A stretch of DNA of 64,000 bases from Haliotis rubra (GCF_003918875.1 NW_025766925.1:434001-498000); one strand, 5' to 3'; counted from the first letter of the stretch, positions 13,105 to 60,324 are shown. Numbers and translations: made by a program. The notes: a model not told the origin generated them from the sequence alone.

Positions 13105-13981
13105 ATGCCGCGACTCAGGAACCAGGCGCTAGGAAGACTTGAAGCTGGCCACACTGCACAAGCCGTTGCCAATCACTTCCATGTCAACGTTCGGACCATC
13201 TACAGGCTGCAGCAACGTTTCCGGGACACCAACACCACAAGTGATCGCCCCCGTACTGGCAGACCTAGGGTGACCAGAAGACGACAAGACCACCATGTTG
13301 TGCAACAGCATGTACAGAATCCTTCATGCAGGCAACCAAAAAAGCACGACAGACAGTGGGAACACACGGAAGACCAATCAGTACTGATACAGTACGCCGA
13401 CGTCTTAACAGCGGGAACCTCCATTGCCGCAGACCTTACCGTGGACCTATCCTCACCCCTCGTCATCGGCGTGAACGTCTACAGTTTGCCCTACAACACC
13501 AAAACTGGCGATAAAGGCAATGGAGAACTGTTCTGTTCACAGATGAGAGTGGTACTGCGTACCAACTGCAGACGGCAGAACCAGAATATGGCGACGACGT
13601 GGCCAGCGTTACTCAGACCAATGTGTTATGGAAAGAGACTCATGGGAAGGTGCAAGCATCATGGTACGCCAGGCCTTTCTCAGAGTGTGGTTCCAGGTGC
13701 CAATGGCCTTCATCAATCGATTGGTGCACTCCATGCATAGACGCTGTGCTGCAGTTATTGCCGCTCGTGGTGGTCACACTAGATACCGAAGTCAAGGGTC
13801 TGAATGGACTGCAAACGTTCACGTAATGTCTTGGAATTGTGCTTAATAACTCATCGATGTGTCAAGATATTGTACACAAACAATGTTTTTGATCCTCTTA
13901 TTATGTCCATTTCTGTAATGATCTGATTACAGTGCCTATATAATTTTGAATTCGTACCGACGTTTTTTATGCTGCTGAGTA
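13105..13981 (+). mobile_element. Defective Tc1-family DNA transposon
   Basis: Paired-type HTH N-terminus (MPRL...GRPRVT), frameshifted continuation ISTDTVRRRL...W.TVLFTDES (first catalytic D), most of the DDE domain deleted, typical C-terminus LVHSMHRRCAAVIAARGGHTRY, right TIR-like end cgttttttatgctgctgagta-TA (13961-13983). Left TIR not identified. Confidence 0.9.
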
Positions 13982-21554: not shown

Positions 21555-21977
21555 GAGGATAAAATAGACAGTGTGCTAGATTTTGGCTATTAGTCAATAC
21601 ACATCATATCATGATAACTGTTTGACAATGACTGAGATAATATAATTAAAACTGATATTTCATCAGCGTAACACTATACATGTATACGACTGTGATCTTT
21701 GACGTCATTGGTGTGTTTTTGAACTCATAGACGGAATCACTCGTATTGGACCACATCGTTTAAAGAAGGGCTGTGTATTTACAATAGGTTATTGCTCGTG
21801 TGGAGTTTTGGGTGCAGTTAATTGTCTTCAATTACGGGAGGGGCGAGAGTTTTGAGATACAGGTGCTGTAAGGAATCATGTTTTGAGATTTGAAAGTTTT
21901 GGGGATGGGGTGTGTACACGAGGTCTTCATATAACCCAGCTGCATTTACTGTGCCAACTTGGATCAGCTGTACATTC

Positions 21978-23040
21978 TGGTAGATACATTGGTTGTATCG
22001 TCCTGGATCAGGCGATAAGAGCCCATAACCCGCTGTTGTACCATGGTAGATACATTGGTTGCACCGTCTCGGAACAGGCGATAAGAGCCCATAGCCTGCT
22101 GTTGTACCATGGTAGATACATTGGTTGTACCGTCCTGGATCAGGCGATAGGTGCCCATTATAGCCCGCTGTTGTACCGTGGTAGATACCTTGGTTGCACC
22201 GTCTCGGAAAAGGCGATAGGTGTCAATAGCCCGCTGTTGTACCGTCTCGGAACAGGCGATAAGAGCCCATAGCCCGTTGTTGTACCGTGGTAGATACATT
22301 GGTTGCACCGTCTCGGAACAGGCGATAAGAGCCCATAGCCCGCTGTTGTACCGTGGTAGATACATTGGTTGCACCGTCCTGAACAGGCGATAAGAGCCCA
22401 TAGCCCGCTGTTGTACCGTGGTAGATACATTGGTTGTACCGTCTCGGAACAGGCGATAAGAGCCCATAGCCCGCTGTTGTACCGTGGTAGATACATTGGT
22501 TGTATCGTCTCGGAACAGGCGATAGGTGCCCATAGCCCGCTGTTACCGTGGTAGATACATTGGTTGTACCGAACAGGCGATAAGAGCCCATAGCCCGCTG
22601 TTGTACCGTGGTAGATACATTGGTTGTACCTTCTCGGAACAGGCGATAAGAGCCCATAGCCCGCTGTTGTACCGTGGTAGATACATTGGTTGTACCTTCT
22701 CGGAACAGGCGATAAGAGCCCATAGCCCGCTGTTGTACCGTGGTAGATACATTGGTTGTACCTTCCTCGGAACAGGCGATAAGAGCCCATAGCCCGCTGT
22801 TGTACCGTGGTAGATACATTGGTTGTACCTTCTCGGAACAGGCGATAAGAGCCCATAGCCCGCTGTTGTACCGTGGTAGATACATTGGTTGTACCGTCCT
22901 GGATCAGGCGATAAGAGCCCATAGCCCGCTGTTGTACCGTGGTAGATACGTTGGTTGCACCGTCTCGGAACAGGCGATAAGAGCCAATAGCCCGCTGTTG
23001 TACCGTGGTAGATACATTGGTTGCACCGTCTTGGATCAGA
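21978..23040. repeat. 66-bp minisatellite, about 16 copies
   Basis: Unit CCGTGGTAGATACATTGGTTGTACCGTCTCGGAACAGGCGATAAGAGCCCATAGCCCGCTGTTGTA; explains the 22-aa periodic ORFs on both strands. Confidence 0.96.
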
Positions 23041-24329
23041 TAGTAAGCCATCTCGCCGCCAAGACCGTGCCCATAGCCCCGGGAGACCGACCGACTCACT
23101 AATAAAGAAATGATCCAAAGGATAAAGCTTCACTGAAGTGGATATAAACTCCTGTTTATCTAGGATTGTGTTTCTAAAATAATGTTTTTACAAACAAACG
23201 CACCGCTGTGAATGTCCGCACCATTACTATAACCGCTGCTCAGATAGTGCTGGTTAGCGGGTATTGGTTTCCCTTTTGACAATTTCAGCTCTAGCGAAAT
23301 GATGAACTAATTTGCCATAATGAAGTTTTAACATGCGGTTTCGGGTATATTTTCATAGAATTATTATATTAGGAGATGATTGAGGATAATTTGCCTCGCC
23401 GTGGGATATTTCTTTTGAGGTTATTGGTGTTATTTAATAGAAAGTCTCCTTATTCTGGTATAAAGCGAATGCGGTAGATCGGAGCAATTATACAGAAGAC
23501 CCAGTGAGAACTGGATGGCCTTTCAATACTCTTCAAGCAGGTGGCAGAATTCATGCAGTCTTTCCTTTCATTGGTTAATTTATTCAGGTAAAACGATTTT
23601 ACAAATGACGCACATTGCGCAATTTATATAATAAACCCTTTCTTGCCTTGTTCATTATCTTCGTAGATGATTGCCTGAATTATTAGCAAATAATATTATG
23701 TTGGTAATGTTTGGGGAAAATGTTTAGAATTGTTTTAATTGGAAAATATCGGTCGATGACAATAAACGTATATGAATAGAGCACCGTTAAAGGCACCCCA
23801 ATGTGTGTGTTTGTGTGTGTTTGTGTGTGTCAACCAAAAAAACCTATAACGTATATTCTTCAATATTTCTCTACTGGGTAAACTAAAATACAATCATTGC
23901 TTTTACAGTTATGGAAATGAATTTGGGAATATATGTGACTGACATGATTCGTCCGAAACTATCATACACAGACCTGCATGCAACAAACCATTTCTATATT
24001 TACAAGAAATGTCAAATAAAACCGTAATCCGGTTTTATGATTCCGACTGTACCGTGTGCATGTGTGTATCAATCACAGTAACAAATGGTGATGATACATG
24101 TTGTTTGCGTACGCGTCACAAACACATGCAAAGGCAAGTCAAACAAAAACATCAAGAGAACACATGGTAACATTATTGAGTATGGTTCCAAGCAGATTAC
24201 CGAACTATAATGTTATGATTATTTATGATAGAAATGGGAAAAGGAATCGGGTCACAAACGTAAAAGAATTATTATTTTCTATTGGATTTGGTAATGCATG
24301 ATATGAAGAGCATATAGAAATCTCATTCA

Positions 24330-29280: not shown

Positions 29281-30976
29281 ATTAGGCAATTAGTCTTTCA
29301 ATGTGTCAACAATGAATCAATATCATGGCATATGTCATCAATGTGTTGCATACTTCTATTAAATCAATATCCTTTAAGTCGATACAATATTTCACAAGCT
29401 TATAAATACAGTCGAAATGTATGTGAGAGCATTACCTCTTTCATTTCGAATGGTTGCTTTGCTGTATATCAATTTTGATAGGATTGACTTTAACAAATAT
29501 GTATCTCCCACTTGACAGTATGCTTAGCGGTAATTGATCCATTTAATAATTTTTATCAATAGAATTTCTGATTACTAGGTTTACAGAAAAAGCCGCCAAG
29601 CAAAACCACTTCTGTGTGTTACCCCGGGGCCATGGGTTTACCTGTGGGATGCTGTCTTGGGTCAGGGTAGATTGGCCCCTCCCCTGGGGGTGCGTCTAGA
29701 TGGCTCCCTGGGACAATGCTATGCAAACATCAACAAAGCTGATTATATTTAGACAGACGCCTTCTCTTCTGTGCGAAAATATCCCCTGATTTATTTCAGT
29801 CAAGTGTGACCCAAAATGAGCGTTTCAATTATATTCTCAGTTGGAGCTAGTTGTATGGATATCTCTATTCACAGCCGGACCCAGAAGTCCGTGCAAGGAT
29901 ATGATACCGCCATTCAACAAATTACCCACGATGCATCATATAGTCTGCCTCTTGTAACCGCGAACCTGTTGACATCCATTTGTAAATTATTTTCTAGCCA
30001 GGGAACTTGTATTTTTAAATTATAGTTATAACCCATGCAATATTCTACCACCAGCGTTACACTCTCACAATGAAAGTTTTCAACAGACAGTTTTTAATGT
30101 GAATTTCATGTTTGAATTATAATGGTAATTTTCCATCGATTTAATACATTGTTAAGCGAATGGGAAGTAGGGAAATGTATACTTGGGGATTTGAGCCTCA
30201 AACTGGGGTTTAATTTGGCGTGACGGAATTATGTGTCTTTTTCCCTTGGGCCTTTTAGAATCATAAATATATCGCATATAAAAACGTTGAACATTTATGT
30301 CATATCTTAATTCAAACGTTTGACATACTTGCCCCTATACAGTGTGTGGACAAAGGCGGTCTTTTGCAGTCAGTTTTATATGTGCCCCGTTTTTTATGGG
30401 GTCAGATACAAAGAAATAATTTTTAACGATTTCACATTGAAAAACACTTATTCTTTAAGTTTAATTATAAGAATGAGCATACACGTGTGTTTGTGTAAAA
30501 GCCATCTGTGTGTAGGTGTTGAAATTGATAATATCAAACTGCGAGTGTATAACTGACGACATGAACATTGTGCCAACTCCTTGTAGTGTATTCAGCATGA
30601 ATATCCCCGTACGGTCAAATGTTTGGCACGATAGTCTATAAACTATAACTCAAGCTAGGTGGCCATTGAACAAAAACTATATATTGCAAATTAAACATAT
30701 ATATTGCAAATTAAAATTGGCATTTTAAGTGTACAGACCTTGTTATGTCACAGTGCACACGTATTACCTTTTAAAATGCCCTAGAAGCAACATATGTCCA
30801 AATTATGAAATTCACAGGCACTCTCTTAATGCAAGTTGTACCAATGGCGGGTACAGCAGCACATGTTTTACTATTGCGGGAACAGTTGGAGTCAGATATC
30901 CATTCATGAAATCTCCCCACTAATTTGTCTTTACCCTCCAGTGGAATCTGTTTCAGTAGATAATCGCGACTGCAAA

Positions 30977-33900
30977 AGACCGTCAGATACAAAGGGCGTG
31001 GAGACTGTCAGATACAACAGTCCGTGGAGACCGTCAGATACAACAGTCCGTGGAGACCGTCAGATACATGAGACCGTGAAGACCGTCAGATACAACAGTC
31101 CGTGGAGACCGTCAGATACATCAGACCGTGAAGACCGTCAGAAACAACAGTCCGTGGAGACCGTCAAATACAACAGTCCGTGGAGACCGTCAGATACAAC
31201 AGTCCGTGGAGACCGTCAGATACAACAGGACGTGGAGACCGTCAGATACAACAGGACGTGGAGACCGTCAGATACAACAGGACGTGGAGACTGTCAGATA
31301 CAACAGGACGTGGAGACCGTCAGATACAACAGGACGCGGAGACCGTCGGATACAACAGTCCGTGGAGACCGTCAGATACAACAGACAGTGGAGACCGTCA
31401 GACACAACAGGACGTGGAGACCGTCAGATACAACAGGACGTGGAGACCAACAGACCAAAAGATACATCAGACTGTGGAGACCGTCAGATACAACAGACAG
31501 TGGAGACCGTCAGACACAACAGTCCGTGGAGACCGTCAGACACAACAGTCCGTGGAGACCGTCAGATACAACAGGACGTGGAGACCATCAGACACAACAG
31601 TCCGTTGAGACTGTCAGATACAACAGACAGTGGAGACCGTCAGATACAACAGACCGTGGAGACTGTCAGATACAACAGACAGTGGAGACCGTCAGATACA
31701 ACAGACCGTGGAGACCGTCAGATACATCAGACCGTGAAGACCGTCAGAAACAACAGTCCGTGGAGACCGTCAAATACAACAGTCCGTGGAGACCGTCAGA
31801 TACAACAGTCCGTGGAGACCGTCAGATACAACAGGACGTGGAGACCGTCAGATACAACAGGACGTGGAGACCGTCAGATACAACAGTCCGTGGAGACCGT
31901 CAGATACAACAGGACGTGGAGACCGTCAGATACAACAGGACGTGGAGACCGTCAGATACAACAGGACGTGGAGACCGTCAGATACAACAGGACGTGGAGA
32001 CCGTCAGATACAACAGGACGCGGAGACCGTCAGATACAACAGTCCGTGGAGACCGTCAGATACAACAGACCGTGGAGACCGTCAGATACAACAGGACGTG
32101 GAGACCGTCAGATACAACAGTCCGTGGAGACCAAAAGATACATCAGACTGTGGAGACCGTCAGATACAACAGACAGTGGAGACCGTCAGACACAACAGTC
32201 CGTGGAGACCGTCAGACACAACAGTCCGTGGAGACCGTCAGATACAACAGGACGTGGAGACCATCAGATACAACAGTCCGTTGAGACCGTCAGATACAAC
32301 AGACGTGGAGACTGTCAGATACAACAGACCGTGGAGACCGTCAGATACAACAGACGTGGAGACCGTCAGATACAACAGACCGTGGAGACCGTCAGATACA
32401 ACAGACCGTGGAGACCGTCAGATACAACAGTCCGTGGAGACCGTCAGATACAACAGTCCGTGGAGACTGTCAGATACAACAGTCCGTGGAGACCGTCAGA
32501 TACAACAGTCCGTGGAGACCGTCAGATACAACAGTCCGTGGAGACCGTCAGATACAACAGTCCGTGGAGACCGTCAGATACAACAGTCCGTGGAGACCGT
32601 CAGATACAACAGTCCGTGGAGACCGTCAGATACAACAGGTCCGTGGAGACCGTCAGATACAACAGTCCGTGGAGACCGTCAGATACAGATACAACAGTCC
32701 GTGGAGACCGTCAGATACAACAGTCCGTGGAGACCGTCAGATACAACAGTCCGTGGAGACCGTCAGATACAACAGGACGTGGAGACCGTCAGATACAACA
32801 GGACGTGGAGACCGTCAGATACAACAGTCCGTGGAGACCGTCAGACACAACAGTCCGTGGAGACCGTCAGATACAACAGGACGTGGAGACCGTCAGATAC
32901 AACAGACGTGGAGACCGTCAAATACAACAGTCCGTGGAGACCGTCAGATACAACAGGACGTGGAGACCGTCAGATACAACAGACCGTGGAGACCGTCAGA
33001 TACAACAGGACGTGGAGACCGTCAGATACAACAGACCGTGGAGACCGTCAGATACACAACAGGACGTGGAGACCGTCAGATACAACAGGACGTGGAGACC
33101 GTCAGATACAACAGGACGTGGAGACGTCAGATCAAGATACGTGGAACAGATACAACAGGACCTGGAGACCGCCAGATACAACAGGACGTGGAGACCATCA
33201 GACACAACAGTCCGTGGAGACCGTCAGATACAACAGGACGTGGAGACCGTCAGACACAACAGACCGTGGAGACCGTCAGATACAACAGGACGTGGAGACC
33301 GTCAGATACAATAGTCCGTGGAGACCGTCAGATACAACAGTCCGTGGAGACCGTCAGATACAACAGTACGTGGAGACCGTCAGATACAATAGTCCGTGGA
33401 GACCGTCAGACACGACAGTCCGTGGAGACCGTCAGATACAACAGTCCGTGGAGACCGTCAGATACAACAGTCCGTGGAGACCGTCAGACACAACAGTCCG
33501 TGGAGACCGTCAGACACAACAGTCCCTGGAGACCGCCAGATACAACAGTCCGTGGAGACCGTCAGACACAACAGTCCGTGGAGACCGTCAGATACAACTG
33601 GACGTGGAGACCGTCAGACACAACAGACCGTGAAGACCGTCAGATACAGCAGGACGTGGAGACCGTCAGACACAGCAGACAGTGGAGACCGTCAGACACA
33701 ACAGTCCGTGAAGACCGTCAGATACAACAGGACGTGGAGACCGTCAGATACAACAGACAGTGGAGACCGTCAGATACAACAGTCCGTGGAGACCGTCAGA
33801 TACAACAGGACGTGGAGACCGTCAGACACAACAGTCCGTGGAGACCGTCAGATACAACAGGACGTGGAGACCGTCAGATACAACAGGACGTGGAGACCGT

Positions 33901-34410
33901 CAGATACAACAGGACGTGGAGACCGTCAGATACAACAGTCCGTGGAGACCGTCAGATACAACAGTCCGTGGAGACCGTCAGATACAACAGTCCGTGGAGA
34001 CCGTCAGATACAACAGTCCCTGGAGACCGTCAAATACAACAGGACGTGGAGACCGTCAGACACAACAGTCCGTGGAGACCGTCAAATACAACAGTCCGTG
34101 GAGACTGTCAGATACAACAGGACGTTGAGACCGTCAGACACAACAGACCGTGGAGACCGTCAGATACAACAGGACGTGGAGACCGTCAGATACAACAGTC
34201 CGTGGAGACCGTCAGATACAACAGGACGTGGAGACCGTCAGACACAACAGACAGTGGAGACCGTCAGACACAACAGTCCGTGGAGACCGTCAGACACAAC
34301 AGACCGTGAAGACCGTCAGATACAATAGTCCGTGGGGACCGTCAGATACAACAGGACGTAGGGACCCTCAGATACAACAGGACGTAGGGACCGTCAGATA
34401 CAGCAGATTG
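30977..34410. repeat. 26-bp minisatellite, about 130 copies (3.4 kb)
   Basis: Unit CGTGGAGACCGTCAGATACAACAGTC with GTCC/GGAC/GACC/GACA variants. The consensus is stop-free in the + frames and produces all ORFs from 30836 to 34413. Confidence 0.98.
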
Positions 34411-36200: not shown

Positions 36201-36362
36201 AGCGCAACTGTTGTAAGGTTGACAAGCATATTAGAGGTGATGATAGCATCACTTCCATCACGCGGGCAGATGCAGCATGGAGGCCTGACGCTTGCCCTTC
36301 AAACTATGGTTGCACAAAAACATTCATTTCAGTTGAACATACACTCACACGAGAAACATTTG

Positions 36363-36615
36363 ATGGTAAACACTGACGGGCGAGCAATGAAACACACGCG
36401 TTTCTTTGTGGAAGACATTCTCAGACCTGACTTCGGAACGGGTAACTCCCACCCGGTATCTCCAGAAGGTCATCAGGATGGGTCCCCTTCATCCTCACCT
36501 GATCACCCACGTAGCCAGGGGTCCGAGCCGCACCCTCAGGACGTGGGGGAAGGGAAGGTGAACCTATGGCCTGCATGGGTATACTGTACCCGGTACTCCG
36601 ACAGACCGTCCGCAG
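36363..36615 (+). CDS. en: Engrailed paralogue B, coding exon 1 (EH1 and EH2)
   Basis: EH1 FFVEDILRPDFG and EH2 LWPAWVYCTRYSDRPSA(G). Phase-1 donor G|GTAGGC at 36616. Start uncertain: in-frame ATGs also at 36240, 36270, 36306 and 36387. Confidence 0.93.
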
Positions 36616-39039
36616 GTAGGCCAAACAGTTCCGTATTCATGATCTAGTGTTGGGGCGGGTTGCCAAATTGGTCGTTAATCTTTTGGTCATTACAGTAATC
36701 TATATAAGGTAAATCAAGTATATATAACACACATACCATGGTTGTGCCAGCGACATGTCATGCATTTGGATATAAGCAACTGGATTAGAAACATAAATAT
36801 AACCTGAAAATTGATAAATGTAAAATATTCTTTCCGTAGGGGCATTTGTATGATAAACACATTTGAAAAAAGCTATTAAAGACTTAATCAAGTATTAAAT
36901 ATGTAACACTATCACTTGACTCACTTTAATATATATATTTTCAGAGGGTTACTATTAAATAGCTGAAGCAACATTATCATCACTGATACCAAATATTTAA
37001 ACAATTTAGATTTTTAAATTTTATTAGAAAATAAACGTTTAACAAATTGCTAATATTTCATAAATCAAAGGAACAAACTCATTCAAGATCTAATAATGAG
37101 AAGGTTAAAACAATGATCATACGTATCGGGATGGAAGTCATGAGGCGGAATCACACCCTGAGTTTTTGTATGATTGTTAAAAAATGTTTCTGAGTTTATC
37201 TATTTTAATTAATATTGGTATCGAATTCTAGACCAAAACTGTTTTCATCTTGCTATTAATTGTATTCCAAATATGTAAACATTCCCTTTCAATGCATTGT
37301 TGTGCAGTATATCTGCACTCCAGCATAATGTGATTGTGAGTCAGTAATGAGATACGTTTTTACACAATTTCTTACAAAAGACCTGGAATTCACCACGTCA
37401 AACAACATCTATATTTCATTCTTCGCACATTCCATGGGTTGAATTCCTGTTTTCACAATCAATCTCTCCATCTCCCCCTCCTGCTTCTTTTCTCTCTTGA
37501 ACTTATCTAAATGCATGTACTCGTAACATGGCATGTCTTGTGAGATGATCAAAGTCTCTCTAAATGCATGATGAATTTCCTTGATCCCAATAGGCAAGCA
37601 ACTATGTCTTTTATCCATAGAGATAGCATTCAAAGCAAAGGTATTTTTCCTAAAAATATGCATATTAAAGTTACTTTCATTTAAAATGACATACGTTAAA
37701 ACATACGCCGACATCCCGGGAAACATCTCGTGTCATAACTATTTGATTGTTATTCACGTGTTCAGAATGTAGTCCGACTCCTACAGCTGACTCAGCTTTT
37801 AACAGAGATCTCTTATGATTATGGAAAAGGTTTTGTCAGTTATATGTATGTACTACATCTCGCAGAGTCTTTATAGGCATTTAACAGTTGGATGTGAGAT
37901 GACAAGTAATATTATGAATAACAGCTGTTCTATTGTATCTACATCAGGTGATGAAAGAGCAAGAAGCTCTGAGACGTTGTGTATATATGATAAAGACGTT
38001 GTTACCCATAATATTCCTTGTCGTGACTACAATGATGCTGACAACATTGATCAGTGTATAAACTATTTCGGATAACTCCACTCTACATAGGGAGTCCTGT
38101 CTTGACATATGCAGCATCAAAGCATATTCACGTCCAGGAGTATAAATATATTTGTATAGGCTCCCTGTTGAGATATGTGTTAAAAGGAATGCTTAACACA
38201 AAGTATCTTTACAAATATTCAGTATATTGTGAGTTTGGTAGTTGTTTTTCCCAATTGCTTTGTTAAAATGTTATCATCTTAGTAATAGGTTTTTTTTCTT
38301 ATTACACTACTTTCCTATTTAACTCTTAATGTAAGTATACTTTTATACATACACATGGAAAACAAATATGTAAATTGAATAACGTTTTGATGGTATGTGG
38401 ACATGGAGAATGGTTCGATCAACATCGTCGTCAGCGGCTCTGGATACATGTATGTGTCAGTTTTGAGAGAGGGGAGTTTGACGAGAGATTTTGTAACGAA
38501 GATAAAAACAGATCGTGATAGCATCAAAAATCTGTCACTCAACGCAAACCCTGTGAATATCCTTCTGTTAACTGAAGAGACATTTCTATATAGAATATAA
38601 CGATAGGTCAGCAAAATATACCCGTACTGGGCCCTGTACCTCCCTCTTTATTACATTGCTGAACTTCACTGAAGTCACAGTTTGAACTCAGTAAACGTAC
38701 TGGTGGACGTCAGCTGGCGTTGATATTACATCAGGAAGGTGGAAGTTTACTGATGTTATTCTTGAACACCTGATCTCATCACTGACTCCGTGATAGACTC
38801 ATGTAATTATATATACAGTCATCATTTACGTAATCATTTAGTCACTCAATACTTTAAGTATGTAGACAACATATAACAAAAACGTATTCCGTAAATTAAC
38901 AAAGAGAAATACTTTGACCACAGTAAACAGGGCTTTCGTTTTTTTCAATGTCATCTTAGCTACGCCCTTACTTAAAGATTGAGGATGTTATATGTTTATC
39001 ATTTAATGTACCGATTACATTAAATGTAGTCACATATCT

Positions 39040-50100: not shown

Positions 50101-50825
50101 TTGCTGGATTCATTATACGCCATAAATGTAAAACCATACATGTACTTTCTGATTTCTTTAAAGCTATAAGTTTTAGTCACTGGATGATGGTAGTCATAGA
50201 AATGTTTAGAATTTCTTAGCATAATAAAATGAATATGATATTTTCAGTTCACTTTGAAAATATACTGTAATATGCAGTCGTGTTGTAAAATGCCCTGATG
50301 ACAATTTCAATTATTTTACTTGTTGACTGTAAAATATATACGATTAATTATGGCAGCGACTACCAGAAGAGAATCATGCTGCTCGTCATTAATAACTATT
50401 TAAGGAGTGGCATTGGGTTTTTTTCTGTTTTGTTTTTTAATTTTGTTTTCATTTGCCAATACAGGGCTCTTCCTTGGGCCAGATCTACAACGTCTATAAG
50501 TCTTTTTCTATATGTACGATGACACATAGAAGCTCTGATATTCGTACATCTGTGATCGTTTATTGGAACGTGGCCCAGGGATATTGATCGATGCTTGTGA
50601 TGTTAATCACTTGATTATTTGGTCCACACTCTATTTATACAGCCACATATATATTATTGTTGAGTGTGGCGATGAACAACGAACAATTAAATACTAGGAT
50701 CCGTACCGACCGGATTAATCATTTTCATTCAGCAATTATTTTGCTAACCAAAAACACTTGTAAACAAAATCAGAGTGTATAAGTTTTGATCCTCAACCTT
50801 TTCAGCATATATTTTATATCAACAG

Positions 50826-51130
50826 GTCCCCGTATTCGCAAAATGAGGAAGAGAGAGAAGAGCACTGAGGAGAAGAGGCCCCGGACAGCGTTCACAACAG
50901 AGCAACTGGACAGACTCCGTGATGAGTTCAACGAGACCCACTACCTCTCGGAAGATCGACGCCGCGTTCTGGCAAAACAACTCAGCCTTAACGAAACACA
51001 GATCAAGATATGGTTCCAGAATAAAAGGGCGAAGTTAAAAAAGTCCTCCGCCTCTGTGAAACCTCTTGCTAATAAACTGATGGCTGAAGGGTTATACAAC
51101 CACTCAACATTCAAACCTGACGGAAGTTGA
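50826..51130 (+). CDS. en: Engrailed paralogue B, coding exon 2 (homeodomain and EH5)
   Basis: Acceptor ttttatatcaacAG at 50824-50825, phase 1, joins exon 1 to give RPSA-G-PRIRK. Translation includes [13 protein letters not shown]...[15 protein letters not shown]...[11 protein letters not shown]; TGA at 51128-51130. Spliced product is 185 aa from ATG 36363. Confidence 0.96.
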
Positions 51131-51844
51131 CGTCATGCAAATCAGTGATCCCAAAGACATGCGCATTTGACATTGCTGCGTTCCACTTGTGCGCAAAAAG
51201 ATACAGGCTTGAAGTGCGTGAAGATTATTGATCTATTGGTGCATGATGCAAACACTACCGTTATTCACGATATGCCTTTATGTATATATAGCTATTTCAG
51301 TACTCATTGAATGATTTACCAGTAAGCATGGGAACAATCGATCTTCAGTTTTGACGCCTGTGTCGGGACACCGGGTGTTTAACCAGCTTGAACAGTCACA
51401 GATTGCATCTATGTGTTGACGCCCTAGTCCTCAGATTAAAGTGGTATAACACCGAGGATATTGTACATAGTATACAGCACAGGTGTAACGTTGGTATTGG
51501 TACTGTCAAGTTCTTCATGCTTAACAAGGCAAATATGTAAATTCTCGTTTATTTGTGCGAATAAGGCTTTGTTAAAGAGGACGAAGTAATTGCGCACTTG
51601 AAATATCAAATTAAACAATTTCTAATATACTACTCAATGTTTGATAGGAATAATCAAATATTTTATTCTATTCAGTTAAACCTGTTGTATCATAAAAATC
51701 ATTTTGTTCATCGCGAAAAGACAAAACACAAAAACACATCCCTACAAAAGTGAAATAAGATATAATGCAAACAAAGGGTCCTTATCATAACACGTTCTGA
51801 ACACAAATTGCAATGTTCCTACCAATTTATAGTGTGTGACTATG

Positions 51845-51975
51845 TCGTTATATCCCAAATGCGCAGATTGATGCTCGTGTTGTCAATCATTGGATTGTCT
51901 GGTCCAGACTCGTTTATTTACAGACCGCCGTCAAGTAGCTGAAATATTGCTGAGTGAGGCGTTTAACAACCAAAA
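51845..51975 (+). mobile_element. SINE family 2, 3' half (another degenerate piece at 50585-50680)
   Basis: ggattgtctggtccagactcg...agctgaaatattgctgagtgaggcgtttaacaac. Confidence 0.8.
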
Positions 51976-52992
51976 TACAAAAATGACATTTATGGTATAC
52001 GACATTCTTCTGAGGCAGTAAACTTCAACATGGAATATGTTATAAATCAATTTGGGGAAAAATCCTGAGATTTTTATGTCTTCGATTTCCTGCATCTAGG
52101 ATGAAATATTTTCAAAACAGACACTTGCCCGAAACTGTTGTAGTGCTGTTCCCGAAATACAGGGAAGATAACACACCTTCCCTTGGACCAAGCAGCAAGT
52201 AATATGCCCCAGTCTCTAGTGTGCTGTCTTAGATGAAATCATCCCGCGAACAGACAGACAAACTGAATTATCTCTTTACGAATAAATTACACTATTTTGA
52301 CATGGTTTCTTGAGTTTATTTTCAAAAAATGCCTTTAAAATTCTTGATCGTCGACCTTATCTGGACCCACTGACAACAGCGCTCTCGACATTAAATGGAA
52401 GATTTAGTGCGAAACGAAAAAGAAAACGTTTTTGCATAAAGCGACTTAGTACAGATGAAAACCAAGTTCTCAGAATCACATAATGTCAGTATTAGATTAC
52501 TTTACCAACGCAGATGTTAAAAAACCTTTCTCAGTTCGTTCAGGTAGGAGTGCACAGTAACTGAAATGTCTTTGAATGAAGATAAAATCATGCCTTATAT
52601 CCTGTTCTTGTAATTTGCATACATGGATCTACTCTCAAATACAAATTATCGGCCCCAAAACAGATTGATAATGATGATGAGGGGTGATAGGTGGGTTCAT
52701 TGAATACATATTCTGCACCGGCAGTTATTTTAGTTCTCAGATCAAAGAACAGATACTCGACGCGAGGACGTGGGAAAAACACAGCAAACGATGACAATGC
52801 AAAACAGTTCATGAGATAATTAATCAGCATATTTACATCCTTTGTAATCTCACACTTTTAAGACACAAATTCACATTCAACATCAACTTTATAATTATCA
52901 GTCGGTACCGTCCGAGATTATCAACTTGTACAATGATCCTCCTGCTGACGTTCATTGGCGTCATGAAGACATCATGTTTTCTGATATTGACG

Positions 52993-53150
52993 TCACTTCC
53001 TCCCTGGTAGTCCGGGGATACTGCAGTGGCAGGCGTCTCCGCCCAGCTGGATGGAACACAGATAGTCGCAGATGTCTGTCGTGGTAGATGGCGCGGGTGT
53101 CGTCTGGGAGTGGTGGGTGTGATTGTTTTGAACTGCCCGTTCCTGGATAT
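52993..53150 (-). CDS. Secreted Cys-rich peptide precursor, last coding exon
   Basis: Acceptor ctttattcccAG (53152-53151). Phase-1 translation (H)IQERAVQNNHTHHSQTTPAPSTTTDICDYLCSIQLGGDACHCSIPGLPGRK*. Candidate AATAAA on the minus strand at 52320-52315. Confidence 0.82.
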
Positions 53151-53953
53151 CTGGGAATAAAGCGACATGGACGTTAAGAGTACAAGAAGATGGACATCGG
53201 TTACAAAATATCGATATATGCAGGATTAAAATAATCGAAGACGTACAATGGTTTCGCGGCTATTCACCCTTTACATATAGTCGTTACTCAATATCATCAC
53301 TGTTTCAAAGATCCAGCTGTATGATTTTAACAACTGTTTTGCCTTTCGGTATATTTGATTTGTTTAGCTATCTATCTCAAGACAATGTTTTGTCTTCAAC
53401 GCTCTATAGAATTTGTTTCTGCAAACAGACTGATTATTTTTGGCATTTACTTTGACTCAAACAAAGAATTACTATTCAACTTGGAGCTTTTAAGAACTTT
53501 AAATCAGTGTATGACAAACCTTTCTGGAATATTATATATTACACAAAAGAAGCTAAAGATCAACCGATGTTAGACAGGATATGCAGCAAGCCACAGTTGA
53601 AACGAACTCAAGAGGGATGTCTGATTCTAGTTCGATATAACCGCACTTTGTTATACGTTTCTCGACTAAAATATACAACAGGTGACCGAACAAAAGTTGG
53701 TTCTATCCGCCAGTTCGAACTCGTGACAAAACATTTATCCATCACCGCTACGAAATTTGTTCTGATATAACAAATCATCACCAGTAATCACAAATGTAAT
53801 GTGTTAAATCGAGATGATTAATAAACAAATAACAAAAATTATACACGCATATCGATTTAATTCTTTGTCACCTTTTAGAGCGAGTTTTACTTATCATCAT
53901 AAGTGTATGCATTCAAACACATAGGGGAAACAGAATAAAATCTTCGTACTAAC

Positions 53954-54128
53954 GATCAAATCTGATGAGGTCTCCACTCTTGACACTGGAACAGTCGCAG
54001 TGGTCCGGCGTCCTCACGTAGGGGAATTCATCCCCACGAGAACAGAAGATGACGCATACCAGTGGGGAGGCGTACACGTAGCACGCTGACAGCGCCAACG
54101 TTGCCAGGATGGGCACACACGACCGCAT
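53954..54128 (-). CDS. Secreted Cys-rich peptide precursor, first coding exon (signal peptide)
   Basis: ATG at 54128; MRSCVPILATLALSACYVYA-SPLVCVIFCSRGDEFPYVRTPDHCDCSSVKSGDLIRFD; phase-1 donor C|GTTAGT at 53953. An upstream acceptor gtttatttcccAG at 54198-54197 implies a further 5' non-coding exon. Confidence 0.82.
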
Positions 54129-54380
54129 GCTTGATTCAGTGGATTTCACCTCTTACAGTGTTCGACTTTCTTGAACGCAGTATGTATGGAACTGATCTGG
54201 GAAATAAACACATGGATCAAATACAAAAGAAGCATAAAGAAACCTAATTGTTGAAATCTACAAAATTAATGTTTTCATTTTGAATATCAATCGGATTCGA
54301 TGTTGCAGCATAGATACTACTGCACGGGTGCCCTTGTTCTCAAACATACATGTGCGACAACAGTCAGAAAATAGAGAATG

Positions 54381-54622
54381 AGTGAGTGAGTTCAGTTTTA
54401 CGCCGCACTCGGCAATATTACAGCTACATGGCAGCGGTCCTGTAAGTAATCGAGTCTGGACCAGACAATCCAGTGATCAACAACATGAGCATCGATCTAC
54501 GTAATTTGGAAACAATAACATGCGTCAACAAAGTCAGCGAGCCTGACCACCCATTCCCGTTAGTCGCCTCTTACGACAAGCATGGGTTACTGAAGATAAA
54601 TTCTAACCCGGATCTTCACGGG
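54381..54622 (-). mobile_element. SINE family 2, full length
   Basis: Reverse-complement family-2 sequence with (GAGT)n tail; possible short TSD AGAATG. Confidence 0.88.
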
Positions 54623-54742: not shown

Positions 54743-55997
54743 ACTTGTTTGAGTGGCATTTTAGAAGTTGAGACGTACAATATATAACAAGTTTTATGGA
54801 TAACAACTTCTTTATAAGATCCAAAGCAGCTCCTCGCCCATCTCAACAGCCAACATCCCCGCATCAAATTCACCATTGAAACAGAGCAGAACAACCAACT
54901 ACCTTTCCTTGATGTCCTTGTGTCCCGCACCTCCTGCAACCAACTCCAGACCTCCGTGTACAGAAAACCAACTCATACGGATCAATACATCCACTACAAC
55001 TCCAACCACCCACCTAAAGTCAAGACCGGCGTCATCTCTACATTGACCAGAAGAGCCAGAAGAGCCAAAAACATCTGCTCAACAAACCTACAGGAAGAAA
55101 TTGAACACCTGAGGAAAGTCTTTGTGGAACGCAACCACTACCCACCTGAAATAGTCAACAGAACCATCGAAGCAACGCTTTCACCTCCTGCCAAAAGGTC
55201 TAAACCAGAATCAGCCCCCATCAAGATATCCATTCCCTACATTGGTAAACCATCACACCAAATCAGCCGACTCCTGAAACAACAGGCAGGAATAGACACT
55301 ACCTTCTCAGCGTCCTCCAGCCTCAACAACCTCCTCCATGCCAACGGAAGAAAACAACCCACCGTCAACAACAACAACCCGAAATGTGTTATTTACAAAA
55401 TAGACTGTGATTGTGGACAATGCTACATAGGTGAAACATCCCGACCCATCAACACCCGAGTCAAAGAACATCGCACCTCTGTTGCTAATTCCGACACCAA
55501 ATCAGCTATCTCTGACCACATCAAAGCCAACCCCAATCATCAAATAGAGTGGTCCGACATCACCATTCTCGCCAACAACCAAACGGACTTCACTAAACGC
55601 AAGCTCACAGAAGCCATTCACATCAAACGCCACAAGCCCACCATCAACCGTGACCAAGGATACTTCATTCCATCTGCTTATGATCCACTCCTCCACCAAG
55701 CCCAGTCTATTGTATAAACATCGCATCCATTGTATAAACATCTCATTGTAACTACATCTCTGGCTTCCACTCACTATCCTTTATGTACTTACTGGCTTCA
55801 TCAGCTTACTGCTTAGCCAATCATGGCAATTATGTTGTTTCCTTTGTCTATTATGTTGTTTCATTGTTATATACAGTATATATATGCAGCTCCTACACTT
55901 CATGTATCACTCTTGCTTGACAACGGTACAAGAATCTGTATCGAAACGTCGCACTCACGAAAATAAAGAAGTTGTTATCCATAAAACTTGTTATATA
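54743..55997 (+). mobile_element. 5'-truncated Penelope-like retroelement (RT C-terminus + GIY-YIG endonuclease)
   Basis: Open frame 54818-55717: LNSQHPRIKFTIE..LPFLDV, VYRKPTHTDQY, VIYKIDCDCGQCYIGETSR..RVKEH. 12-bp TSD GAGAATTATTTA (54731-54742, 55998-56009). 35-bp perfect inverted repeat 54781-54815 / 55963-55997. Confidence 0.95.
55914..55953 (+). ncRNA. Minimal type I hammerhead ribozyme-like motif (U3-A8 variant core) in the Penelope 3' repeat
   Basis: TGC-TTGACAA-C-GGTACA-AGAATC-TGTATC-GAAA-CG-TC-GCA: stem I TGC/GCA, stem II GGTACA/TGTATC, GAAA and a GUC cleavage triplet. Confidence 0.7.
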
Positions 55998-57819: not shown

Positions 57820-57935
57820 CAGACTGTGCGCTTCTGATTAGGAGTCAAAAGCCTTGGAACCCAGAGTGATGAAGCCTTCAGTTCCCTTACTGTATTGGCT
57901 GTGTGATGTCTAGTGAGACGTCGACCAACCGTAAT
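57820..57935 (-). mobile_element. Mariner transposase remnant
   Basis: KASSLWVPRLLTPNQKR matches the mariner WVPHEL linker motif. Confidence 0.65.
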
Positions 57936-58415
57936 CATATATATTAAAGATATGGCCCGAAATATATATGTTTTTAGAAACTTAAAAGTCTTTTTTCAAA
58001 AGTCTCAAGCATATTTATTTTTTCCAGACACTTTCGTCTTTCTTAAATGCTTTAATATAGAAAGTGACCGTTACTATATAAGAAGTGCATGTTACTATAT
58101 CGGAAGTGCATGTTACTATATAGGAAGTGCATGTTACTATATAGGAAGTGCATGTTACTATATAGGATGTGACTGTTACTATATAGGAAGTGCATGTTAC
58201 TATATGGGAAGTGACTGTTACTATATAGGAAGTAACCGTTACTGTATAGGAAGTGCATGTTACTATATAGGAAGTGCATGTTACTATATGGGAAGTGACT
58301 GTTACTATATAGGAAGTGCATGTTACTATATAGGTAGTGACTGTTACTATAGGAAGTGCATGTTACTATATAGGTAGTGACTGTTACTATATAGGAAGTG
58401 CCTGTTACTATATGG

Positions 58416-58470
58416 AGTGAGTGAGTGGGTTTAGTTTTACGCACTCAGCAATATTCCAGCTATATGGCGG
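58416..58470 (-). mobile_element. Severely 5'-truncated SINE family 2 tail
   Basis: agtgagtgagtgggtttagttttacgcactcagcaatattccagctatatggcgg flanked by CTGTTACTATATGG on both sides. Confidence 0.85.
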
Positions 58471-59462
58471 CTGTTACTATATGGGAAGTGCATGTTACTA
58501 TGTGGGAAGTTCATGTTATTATATAAGAAGAACATTTTACTATATAGGAAGTGCATGCTACTATATAAGAAGTGCATGTTACAATATTGGAAGTGCATGC
58601 TACTATATGGGAAGAACATGTTACTATATGGGAAGTGCATGCTACTATATAAGAAGTGCATGTTACTATGTGGGAAGTTCATGTTATTATATAAGAAGAA
58701 CATTTTACTATATAGGAAGTGCATGCTACTATATAAGAAGTGTATGTTACTATATGGGAAGTTCATGCTACAATATGGGAAGAACATGTTACTGTATGGG
58801 AAGTGCATGCTGCTATATAAGAAGTGCATGTTACTATATGGGAAGAACATGTAACTATGTGGGAAGTGCATGCTACTATATAAGAAGTGCATGTTACTAT
58901 ATGGGAAGAACATGTTACTATATGGGAAGTGCATGCTACTATATAAGAAGTGTATGTTACTATTTGGGAAGTGTATGTTACTATTTGGGAAGTGCATGTT
59001 ACTCCATGGTAAGTGCATGTTACTATATAAGAAGTGCATGTTACTGTATGGGAAGTGGATTTTACTATATAAGAAGTGACTGTTACTATATGGGAAGTGC
59101 ATGTTACTATATAAGAAGTACATGTTACTATATAAGAAGTGCATGTTACTATGTGGGAAGTGGATTCTAATATATAAGAAGTGACTGTTACTATATGGGA
59201 AGTGCATGTTACTCTATGGTAAGTGGATTGTACTATATAAGAAGTGCATGTTACTATATGGGAAGTGGATTTTAATATATAAGAAGTGACTGTTACTATA
59301 TGGGAAGTGCATGTTACTATTTGGGAAGTGCATGTTTCTCTATGGTAAGAGCATGTTACTATATGGGAAGTGGATTTTAATATATAAGAAGTGACTGTTA
59401 CTATATGGGAAGTGCATGTTACTATATGGGAAGTGCATGATACTATATGGGACGTTGATTTT

Positions 59463-60324
59463 ATCATCTAACGGAGGGCGTTATCGGTGCAATAAAGCAA
59501 TCTGATAAATTTGGTATCCAAATCTGATAACTATGCAAATTAGGTGAATCCACGAACTACTTTCACAAAACTCAAAACACGCCATGCGAATCCTAAAACG
59601 TTTAATATTTCATTGATGACGTCGTCGAGAGTTTACATTATTTGTAAACAAACATGGCTGCCCCCATTCTCAAAATTGGTGATTCTGTAAGAATTGATTA
59701 CCGAGGTTCTGGAGTCGTTACTGCAGTAATTGACTTTGGAAAACATGAAACGGAGTACTTCGTTCAAATTGAAGGTACGGATTATGAGATACGACTGAAA
59801 GGCAGTCGTCTAAGAAAGGTACCAACCAAGGATTTCGATCTATCGATCACAATACTGACGACGAATCCGTTCTGAAGGTATCAGAAACTGATATTGATGA
59901 GGTGATTACCCGCAGTGAAAATAGAAACACTGCCAGGAAAACCCTGCTCGATTTTGTTGTTCTTTTTAGACAGAAAGAACTTATTTTAAGCATGAGTTAT
60001 GTTTGCACTGTATTAGCGACTAGTCACAACTATATGCCGCCCTCATGAACGACCTTCACCTTGGTGTACCGCTGAGTATTCTTACGCGACTGCTCGATTC
60101 TATTCATATAAATTTACGTACGATTTGCTTCTATTTTTAGAGTAATTTTAAGAATGACATTATATGATAAAGAGATTATTAACCTCGTCTGTTTCCGTAT
60201 AATTAATATCATATATTAGGAATAAAAATTATGTATTATGCTCGCCAAAGGCTCGCACAATACAATTTTTATTCCTAATATATGATATTAATGATACGGA
60301 AACACACTCGGTTAATAATCTCTA
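59463..60324 (+). mobile_element. Internally deleted transposon, probably Crypton-like, with a long terminal palindrome
   Basis: Unique sequence splitting the 21-bp array. ORF 59654-59875, then a shifted frame VSETDIDEVITRSENRNTARKT that resembles the N-terminus of Crypton/DUF3504 tyrosine-recombinase proteins. ~150-bp inverted repeat at 60171-60323. Confidence 0.55.

Follow-up and report, generated by a model that had tools for sequence, protein, structure and literature searches.

The stretch of DNA analysed here, hereafter the window, is a 64,000-nucleotide segment of the Haliotis rubra genome (GCF_003918875.1 NW_025766925.1:434001-498000), in which a small two-exon gene for a predicted secreted cysteine peptide lies on the minus strand beside engrailed. 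The open reading frame (ORF) starts with an ATG at 54128 and stays open to 53954, where it meets the donor GTTAGT. The acceptor (ttattcccAG, with a pyrimidine-rich tract before the AG) places the junction at 53151/53150, and splicing in phase 1 (C + AT) creates His59, after which the frame closes with TGA at 52995-52993. The spliced product of 54128-53954 and 53150-52993 is 110 amino acids long, and the parts of the gene are as follows.

53954..54128, minus strand: coding exon 1, covering amino acids 1-58 and base 1 of codon 59; predicted signal peptide and Cys module 1.
54069..54128, minus strand: predicted signal peptide (amino acids 1-20), ending V-Y-A; hydrophobic core with a grand average of hydropathy (GRAVY) of 1.37 and small residues at -3/-1.
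53991..54056, minus strand: module 1, C25-x3-C29-x14-C44-x-C46; a CX3C...CXC pattern shared by nearly every relative, the loop in between being variable.
53151..53953, minus strand: intron of 803 bp, GT...AG, phase 1; equivalent phase-1 intron in 8/8 relatives' genomic loci.
52993..53150, minus strand: coding exon 2, from the rest of codon 59 to K110 and TGA; His/Thr/Pro linker, module 2 and predicted amidation signal.
53023..53070, minus strand: module 2, C86-x3-C90-x8-C99-x-C101; the family signature, with eight invariant residues in 34 sequences.
52996..53004, minus strand: G108-R109-K110, predicted amidation signal for carboxypeptidase and PAM, which would leave ...P-G-L-P-NH2; G108 invariant.
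52300..52992, minus strand: probable 3' untranslated region (UTR); AATAAA starts at 52320 on the minus strand, and the region is conserved in comparison with H. cracherodii.

The signal peptide was called by eye and from hydropathy, and 19 of its 20 residues are the same in H. cracherodii. In the list of ORFs for the window, exon 1 falls within 53949-54149, and exon 2 is covered just by a wrong-frame ORF (52833-53168), as an earlier note on this DNA had correctly observed. When the 66-amino-acid ORF over exon 1 (53952-54149, minus strand) was used as a query, it retrieved a 110-amino-acid database protein (P0001), "uncharacterized protein LOC124281370 [Haliotis rubra]", which proved letter-identical to our spliced product in a local script comparison. 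The splice model that the note had put forward, with its coordinates and its 110-residue translation, is therefore exact, and the Cys spacings and terminal G-R-K are as it had described them. In database searches the exons were used separately, and P0001 served for all full-length searches. The abalone peptide gene is real, two-exon and protein-coding; contrary to the note's description it is not hidden, because RefSeq already carries the exact protein as uncharacterised LOC124281370, without a function.

The gene is single-copy. Neither exon, nor the family profile, found a second copy in the H. rubra genome (1.378 Gb in 2855 contigs searched), and the best genome-wide match of profile A2, which derives from an alignment of 34 sequences with abalone included, was exon 2 itself (E 2.7e-17). 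A DNA sequencing run labelled as the same species yielded a single 2466-bp contig across 51944-54404 at a depth corresponding to single-copy sequence. In that contig a plus-strand T>C at 53144 changes Gln61 to Arg; this is probably a segregating allele, because Arg is the H. cracherodii residue at that position.

Intact orthologues were present in three other Haliotis-group sequences. Orthologues retain the eight cysteines as well as the two exons and the phase of the intron. The H. cracherodii orthologue encodes 116 amino acids and has the same GT-AG phase-1 intron, 348 bp long, and a third, closely related abalone is represented by a genomic contig with both exons intact. Comparison of H. 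rubra with H. cracherodii by the Nei-Gojobori method gave a synonymous divergence (dS) of 0.45, a nonsynonymous divergence (dN) of 0.13 and a dN/dS ratio (omega) of 0.29 overall, with 8 synonymous and 0 nonsynonymous differences in the final 28 codons (T83-K110). Identity between the two species stood at 82% in exon 1 and 84% in exon 2, against 57% in the intron (479 gap columns) and 61% in the 5' flank. The abalone peptide gene is under purifying selection. Conservation continues past the coding region: most of 52200-52999 shows ~83% identity to H. cracherodii, which is the level of the coding exons, with 68% in the 52600-52799 bin. The conserved ~700 bp 3' of the stop codon are probably the 3' UTR of the peptide gene; they could instead, or additionally, be the 3' UTR of engrailed read from the other strand.

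Beyond the abalones, a word search matched a member from the caenogastropod Babylonia areolata at E 2.9e-8, in which 25 of the 29 terminal residues are the same as in abalone. Profile A1, built from two abalone sequences and the Babylonia protein, was then searched against 1.84 billion representative proteins and matched 51 at E<=1e-3, 13 of these at E<=1e-10. Every named match came from a mollusc, either a gastropod (Haliotis, Gigantopelta, Patella with two genes, Littorina, Babylonia, Aplysia, Elysia, Lymnaea, Physella and Bulinus) or a bivalve (Solemya, Mytilus, Pinctada, Saccostrea, Crassostrea/Magallana, Argopecten, Mactra with three adjacent genes, Dreissena with adjacent genes, Mya, Mercenaria, Potamilus and Sinanodonta), and several further matches were anonymous metatranscriptome contigs. 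No cephalopod, chiton or non-mollusc names occurred among the profile A1 matches. All members are labelled as uncharacterised or hypothetical, save the Aplysia protein NP_001191460.1/Q06AD3, a "putative pheromone precursor". Pfam returned no family for either exon up to E 10, nor for the proteins P0001 and P0004 up to E 0.1, and literature searches with motif strings, accession numbers and 'LPamide'-type peptide names gave no paper on the family. The homologues that the earlier note had called for, conserving the Cys spacing and the Gly-basic end, thus exist in the form of ~50 molluscan relatives, and together they are a mollusc family without a name or described function, whose members are small secreted peptides rich in cysteine and probably amidated.

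Across alignment A2 the members share a common plan: a hydrophobic N-terminus, module 1, a linker, module 2 and a tail of the form x-P-x-[LVI]-P-G. Hydrophobic N-termini are found in nearly all full-length relatives, which agrees with the secreted protein proposed in the earlier note. The linker is 15-102 residues long, rich in Thr/Ser/Pro and often with His runs, its Ser/Thr/Pro fraction ranging from 0.19 to 0.67 across members (0.33 in abalone). Module 2 contains eight residues that are invariant in all 34 sequences (C86, L89, C90, G95, G96, A98, C99 and C101). The predicted mature abalone product comprises 87 amino acids (9.5 kDa, isoelectric point (pI) 5.5), and module 2 alone is more acidic (pI 4.05, charge -3.6).

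The abalone C-terminus reads I-P-G-L-P-G-R-K-stop. G108 is invariant in the 34 aligned sequences, and 30 of them end in Gly followed by 0-2 K/R and a stop, with the residues after the Gly varying among RK, K, KK, R, RR and none. Gly followed by basic residues is the amidation donor chemistry known from PAM substrates, and an invariant Gly with freely varying basic followers strongly supports C-terminal amidation. On this, the strongest evidence for it, the C-terminus is likely amidated, in line with the earlier proposal.

Several relatives carry additional copies of the C-terminal module. P0005, P0006, P0007 and P0010 each hold two or three copies of module 2, mostly with G-K-R after them and mostly with KR or another basic site before them; one multi-copy relative sits on a 1.2-kb metatranscriptome contig. 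The linker residue Arg63 of the abalone protein aligns with Arg in both other A1 sequences, in a poorly aligned part, and its use as a monobasic or RxxR-type cleavage site would be speculation. The earlier note had also seen a duplicated four-Cys module, one per exon. In P0029, module 1 is spaced like module 2 and scores E 5.6e-7 against the module-2 profile, whereas the match of abalone module 1 to that profile was not significant (E 0.46). A duplicated-module origin is thus supported through the intermediate P0029, not directly in abalone.

A few members depart from the common plan. P0028 and P0056 of Physella acuta have, by eye, an LDL-receptor class A-like Cys domain in place of module 1, and are mislabelled by RefSeq as 'sortilin-related receptor-like' and 'suppressor of tumorigenicity 14 homolog'. 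Bivalve family genes form tandem arrays in Mactra (ACF0H5_011693-5) and Dreissena (DPMN_074502/3), and the 254-amino-acid P0008 of Solemya velum looks like a fusion of two adjacent genes in one prediction.

AlphaFold2 supplied with 3 sequences gave an unusable model (predicted local distance difference test, pLDDT, of 40), and with 34 sequences reached a pLDDT of 65.7, with one helix predicted at 22-31 and another at 82-92, each covering a CX3C motif. Local pLDDT was 70-80 at the C25-C29 helix and about 58-63 over module 2, and the model was used for helix positions alone. Foldseek found no match in the PDB, a profile search of PDB sequences gave one irrelevant match (a photosystem II subunit, E 1.6), and an ESM Atlas search by features returned scores at chance level (0.82 and 0.79).

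All eight genomic loci that were compared (Haliotis, Babylonia, Gigantopelta, two in Patella, Aplysia, Crassostrea and Argopecten) consist of two coding exons with a GT-AG phase-1 intron lying 0-13 residues past module 1. The one-module-per-exon part of the earlier proposal therefore holds at every locus, and this arrangement is ancestral. Intron-free contigs with a full ORF were found in an Aplysia run and a Crassostrea run, which indicates that the relatives are transcribed, and spliced as modelled. Within the 2076-bp intron of Babylonia areolata, a 119-bp unit is tandemly repeated 13 times (L008:10303-11864), each copy with (TG)n/(GA)n runs and the end of exon 1 together with its donor (...CGCTGCCACTGTG followed by GTCAGT), giving many pseudo-donor sites.

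The neighbouring gene is engrailed, as the earlier note had stated:

50786..51130, plus strand: engrailed homeobox exon (the coordinates delimit the ORF and not the exon); Pfam matches to Homeodomain (4e-22) and Engrail_1_C_sig (9e-8).

Engrailed and the peptide gene are convergent, with stop codons 1.86 kb apart. The same tail-to-tail pairing occurs in H. cracherodii and in the neomphaline Gigantopelta aegis (~0.8 kb between called genes), and engrailed was not found within 10 kb in six of nine loci (Babylonia, both Patella genes, Aplysia, Crassostrea and Argopecten), suggesting that the linkage is old in one gastropod branch and not family-wide. Nothing suggests a functional tie between the two genes. 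Upstream of the homeobox exon by ~14 kb, an ORF at 36219-36647 (plus strand) contains engrailed EH1/EH2-like motifs (…EDILRPDFG…, …LWPAWVYCTRYSDRPS…) and has no Pfam match; the ORF is probably engrailed exon 1.

On either side of the peptide gene lies one of two inverted copies (51842-51923 and 54440-54521; 82 nt each, 82% complementary) of a short repeat with a very high copy number, whose summed contig depth in the DNA run was 10^6-10^7 compared with ~58 over the gene; many contigs join both repeat parts, reflecting other genomic copies of the repeat. Long tandem-repeat ORFs, which are mini- or macrosatellites on both sides of the candidate for engrailed exon 1, lie at 30836-34328 (plus strand), 21883-23133 and 57913-59467, with units of ~20-25 amino acids (...ETVRYN(S/R)(P/T)WRPSDTT(V/G)RGDRQIQQ(S/D)V...), GRYIGCTVSEQAIRAHSPLLY and (SACYYIG)n; the 32-34 kb block has a GC content of 0.54 and an AT skew of 0.43. 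A 265-amino-acid ORF at 54920-55717 (plus strand), in a moderately repeated region, shows by eye a GIY-YIG-like stretch (…CYIGETSRPINTRVKEHR…), with no Pfam match at E<=0.1, and may be a Penelope-like retroelement remnant. A 211-amino-acid ORF at 13105-13740 (plus strand) looks, by eye, like the DNA-binding N-terminal region of a Tc1/mariner-type transposase.

The abalone protein is almost certainly a real, secreted member of this family. As to what it does, we lean towards a secretory precursor acting as an extracellular signalling ligand, with the conserved C-terminal module as its receptor-binding part. Secretion, disulfide pairing, amidation, glycosylation and signalling are all steps that we infer. 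Removal of the signal peptide would leave a ~9.5 kDa acidic product in three parts: the variable N-terminal CX3C...CXC module, a His/Thr/Pro-rich linker that is probably O-glycosylated, and the near-invariant C-terminal CX3C-X8-CXC module. Each module would form a cysteine-stabilised helix motif, in which the CX3C helix is pinned to the CXC segment by two disulfides (putatively C86-C99 and C90-C101 in module 2, and likewise in module 1). The terminal Arg-Lys would be trimmed and Gly108 converted by PAM, leaving ...Pro-Gly-Leu-Pro-amide. A more ambitious version of this reading, which we hold tentatively and consider possible without regarding it as probable, is that of an unrecognised hormone or neuropeptide system common to gastropods and bivalves, outside the neuropeptide catalogues, in which an equally conserved receptor would bind a two-disulfide amidated ligand with the consensus D-I-C-D-Y-L-C-S-I-Q-L/M-G-G-D-A-C-x-C-S-x-P-x-L-P-amide; in vetigastropods and neomphalines its gene would have kept the convergent position beside engrailed.

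A number of observations weigh against the signalling reading. No listed H. rubra run that contains the locus is recorded as RNA; three small presumed-RNA runs produced contigs on the flanking high-copy repeats alone, none over 52036-54313, and are uninformative; and among Logan-assembled proteins there was no match to the full-length abalone product. Between its modules the abalone protein lacks a conserved dibasic site, the structure model is just moderately confident and finds no fold match, and no experiments on any family member were found in the literature. The family was also not found in the supplements of the abalone ganglia transcriptome and peptidome, of the oyster ganglia catalogue and of the part of the pan-mollusc catalogue that was covered, which argues against abundant neuronal expression; the only string matches in the last of these, to PPLPamide of Platynereis and to a chiton sequence that is unrelated, were rejected as family members. 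Some of the same observations could be turned in favour of a chance ORF pair or a mis-annotation, given the missing H. rubra transcript in the runs examined and the lack of a Pfam domain, but this explanation deserves almost no credence, being effectively refuted by the conservation of ~50 mollusc proteins, the omega of 0.29 with none of the eight differences in the last 28 codons nonsynonymous, the intron phase kept in 8/8 loci and the spliced transcripts of relatives.

Among functional readings, a signalling ligand (hormone, neuropeptide or pheromone) seems to us rather likelier than a defence or structural protein. The absence from abalone ganglia neuropeptide lists would fit an exocrine water- or mucus-borne protein pheromone, released whole like the albumen-gland pheromones of Aplysia and not an internal hormone or neuropeptide; the sole named relative is the Aplysia 'putative pheromone precursor', and the abalone product, a small, probably glycosylated protein rich in disulfides, lacks an internal cleavage site. 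We nevertheless regard an exocrine pheromone of this kind as unlikely, since the Q06AD3 label is a depositor's guess with no paper found behind it, module 2 is near-invariant across gastropods and bivalves, which is unusual for species-recognition signals, and amidation together with KR-flanked multi-copy precursors is typical of peptides of the regulated secretory pathway. It is more doubtful still that the protein serves defence or structure, as an antimicrobial cysteine-stabilised peptide or as a component of mantle, shell matrix or mucus. CX3C...CXC is the core motif of CS-alpha-beta defensins, the protein has a mucin-like Thr/Pro linker and a His-rich stretch, and the gene adjoins engrailed, which is tied to the molluscan shell field. 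However, module 2 is acidic, unlike cationic antimicrobial peptides; the gene exists in one copy on which strong purifying selection acts, in contrast to the diversification usual for defence peptides; there is no defensin or other Pfam match; and the engrailed linkage is missing within 10 kb at six of the nine loci. Of the three identities that the earlier note had suggested (neuropeptide-, hormone- or defence-like), defence is the one made less likely by the conservation and by the acidity of module 2. The note's further suggestion, a precursor of the PXXXamide/iPTH/QSGamide type, is very improbable: the predicted P-G-L-P-amide literally fits P-x-x-x-amide and the Gly-basic signal is present, but the architecture contradicts it (eight Cys, no upstream dibasic site, no C-terminal extension) and the family profile found no named non-mollusc protein.

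The main value of the result lies in the family and not in the single gene, as ~50 mollusc proteins, all but one of them annotated as uncharacterised or hypothetical, share a near-invariant, probably amidated four-Cys module. Identity at 25 of 29 residues between abalone and a caenogastropod is a level of conservation typical of ligands with a conserved receptor, and a conserved family outside the searched catalogues makes a testable orphan signalling peptide candidate. Its occurrence in abalone, oysters, scallops and schistosome-vector snails would be relevant to aquaculture and disease, and the predicted mature end, ...PGLP-NH2 with disulfides, is a defined target for peptidomics.

Among the closest known systems is the Aplysia protein Q06AD3 (P0015), which belongs to the same family (profile A1 match at E 4.8e-10, ~38% identity overall) and shows a signal peptide, CX3C...CXC, a Thr/Pro linker, CX3C-X8-CXC, a PSLPGKK-stop ending and a two-exon phase-1 gene; a run contig shows it to be transcribed and spliced. 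It differs in having a linker without His and in ending KK where abalone has RK. The word 'pheromone' is here a depositor's label for which no supporting paper was found in the literature, and the separate name 'pheromone Alb-1-like' suggests that Q06AD3 is probably not Alb-1.

PXXXamide belongs to the same family as insect PTH (iPTH) and QSGamide. These peptides, for which no cysteines are mentioned, are released from a longer precursor by cleavage at a KR before the peptide and a G-R-R after it. The abalone protein resembles them in its Gly-plus-basic amidation signal and in a Pro at -4 from the amide (P-G-L-P-amide), a match of little weight because the iPTH paper rates that Pro as merely 'mildly conserved'. 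It differs in its eight conserved Cys, its two modules, the lack of an upstream dibasic site (KR) and the stop directly after G-R-K, so that of the relation proposed in the earlier note just the ending fits. The family profile, searched against the same 1.84 billion proteins, found no named arthropod or annelid protein, though iPTH is widespread in arthropods, and in this indirect comparison no sequence relationship to the iPTH/QSGamide precursors emerged.

At the level of the modules, the nearest parallels are the cysteine-stabilised helix peptides. The cysteine-stabilised helix motif of scorpion toxins and CS-alpha-beta defensins pairs a CX3C helix with CXC, and it occurs in reverse order in apamin, tertiapin and the endothelins. 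Each abalone module has the same CX3C...CXC spacing, with a predicted helix over CX3C, and the C-terminal module would resemble apamin and tertiapin in being a small amidated peptide with two disulfides. Compared with defensins, the abalone modules are without the third disulfide, are acidic instead of basic, and come as two joined by a mucin-like linker; searches of Pfam, PDB sequences and Foldseek gave no match to CS-alpha-beta defensins or to the insulin superfamily. A likeness to the insulin A-chain (C-x3-C-x8-C), seen by eye, was rejected, there being no Pfam insulin match and an invariant Gly-Gly where insulin has a helix.

Finally, the layout of multi-copy amidated neuropeptide precursors recurs in P0005, P0006, P0007 and P0010, with G-K-R after most copies of the module and KR or another basic site before most of them. 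The abalone precursor differs from these in having a single C-terminal module 2 and no conserved internal cleavage site, and its product may accordingly act as a whole small protein.

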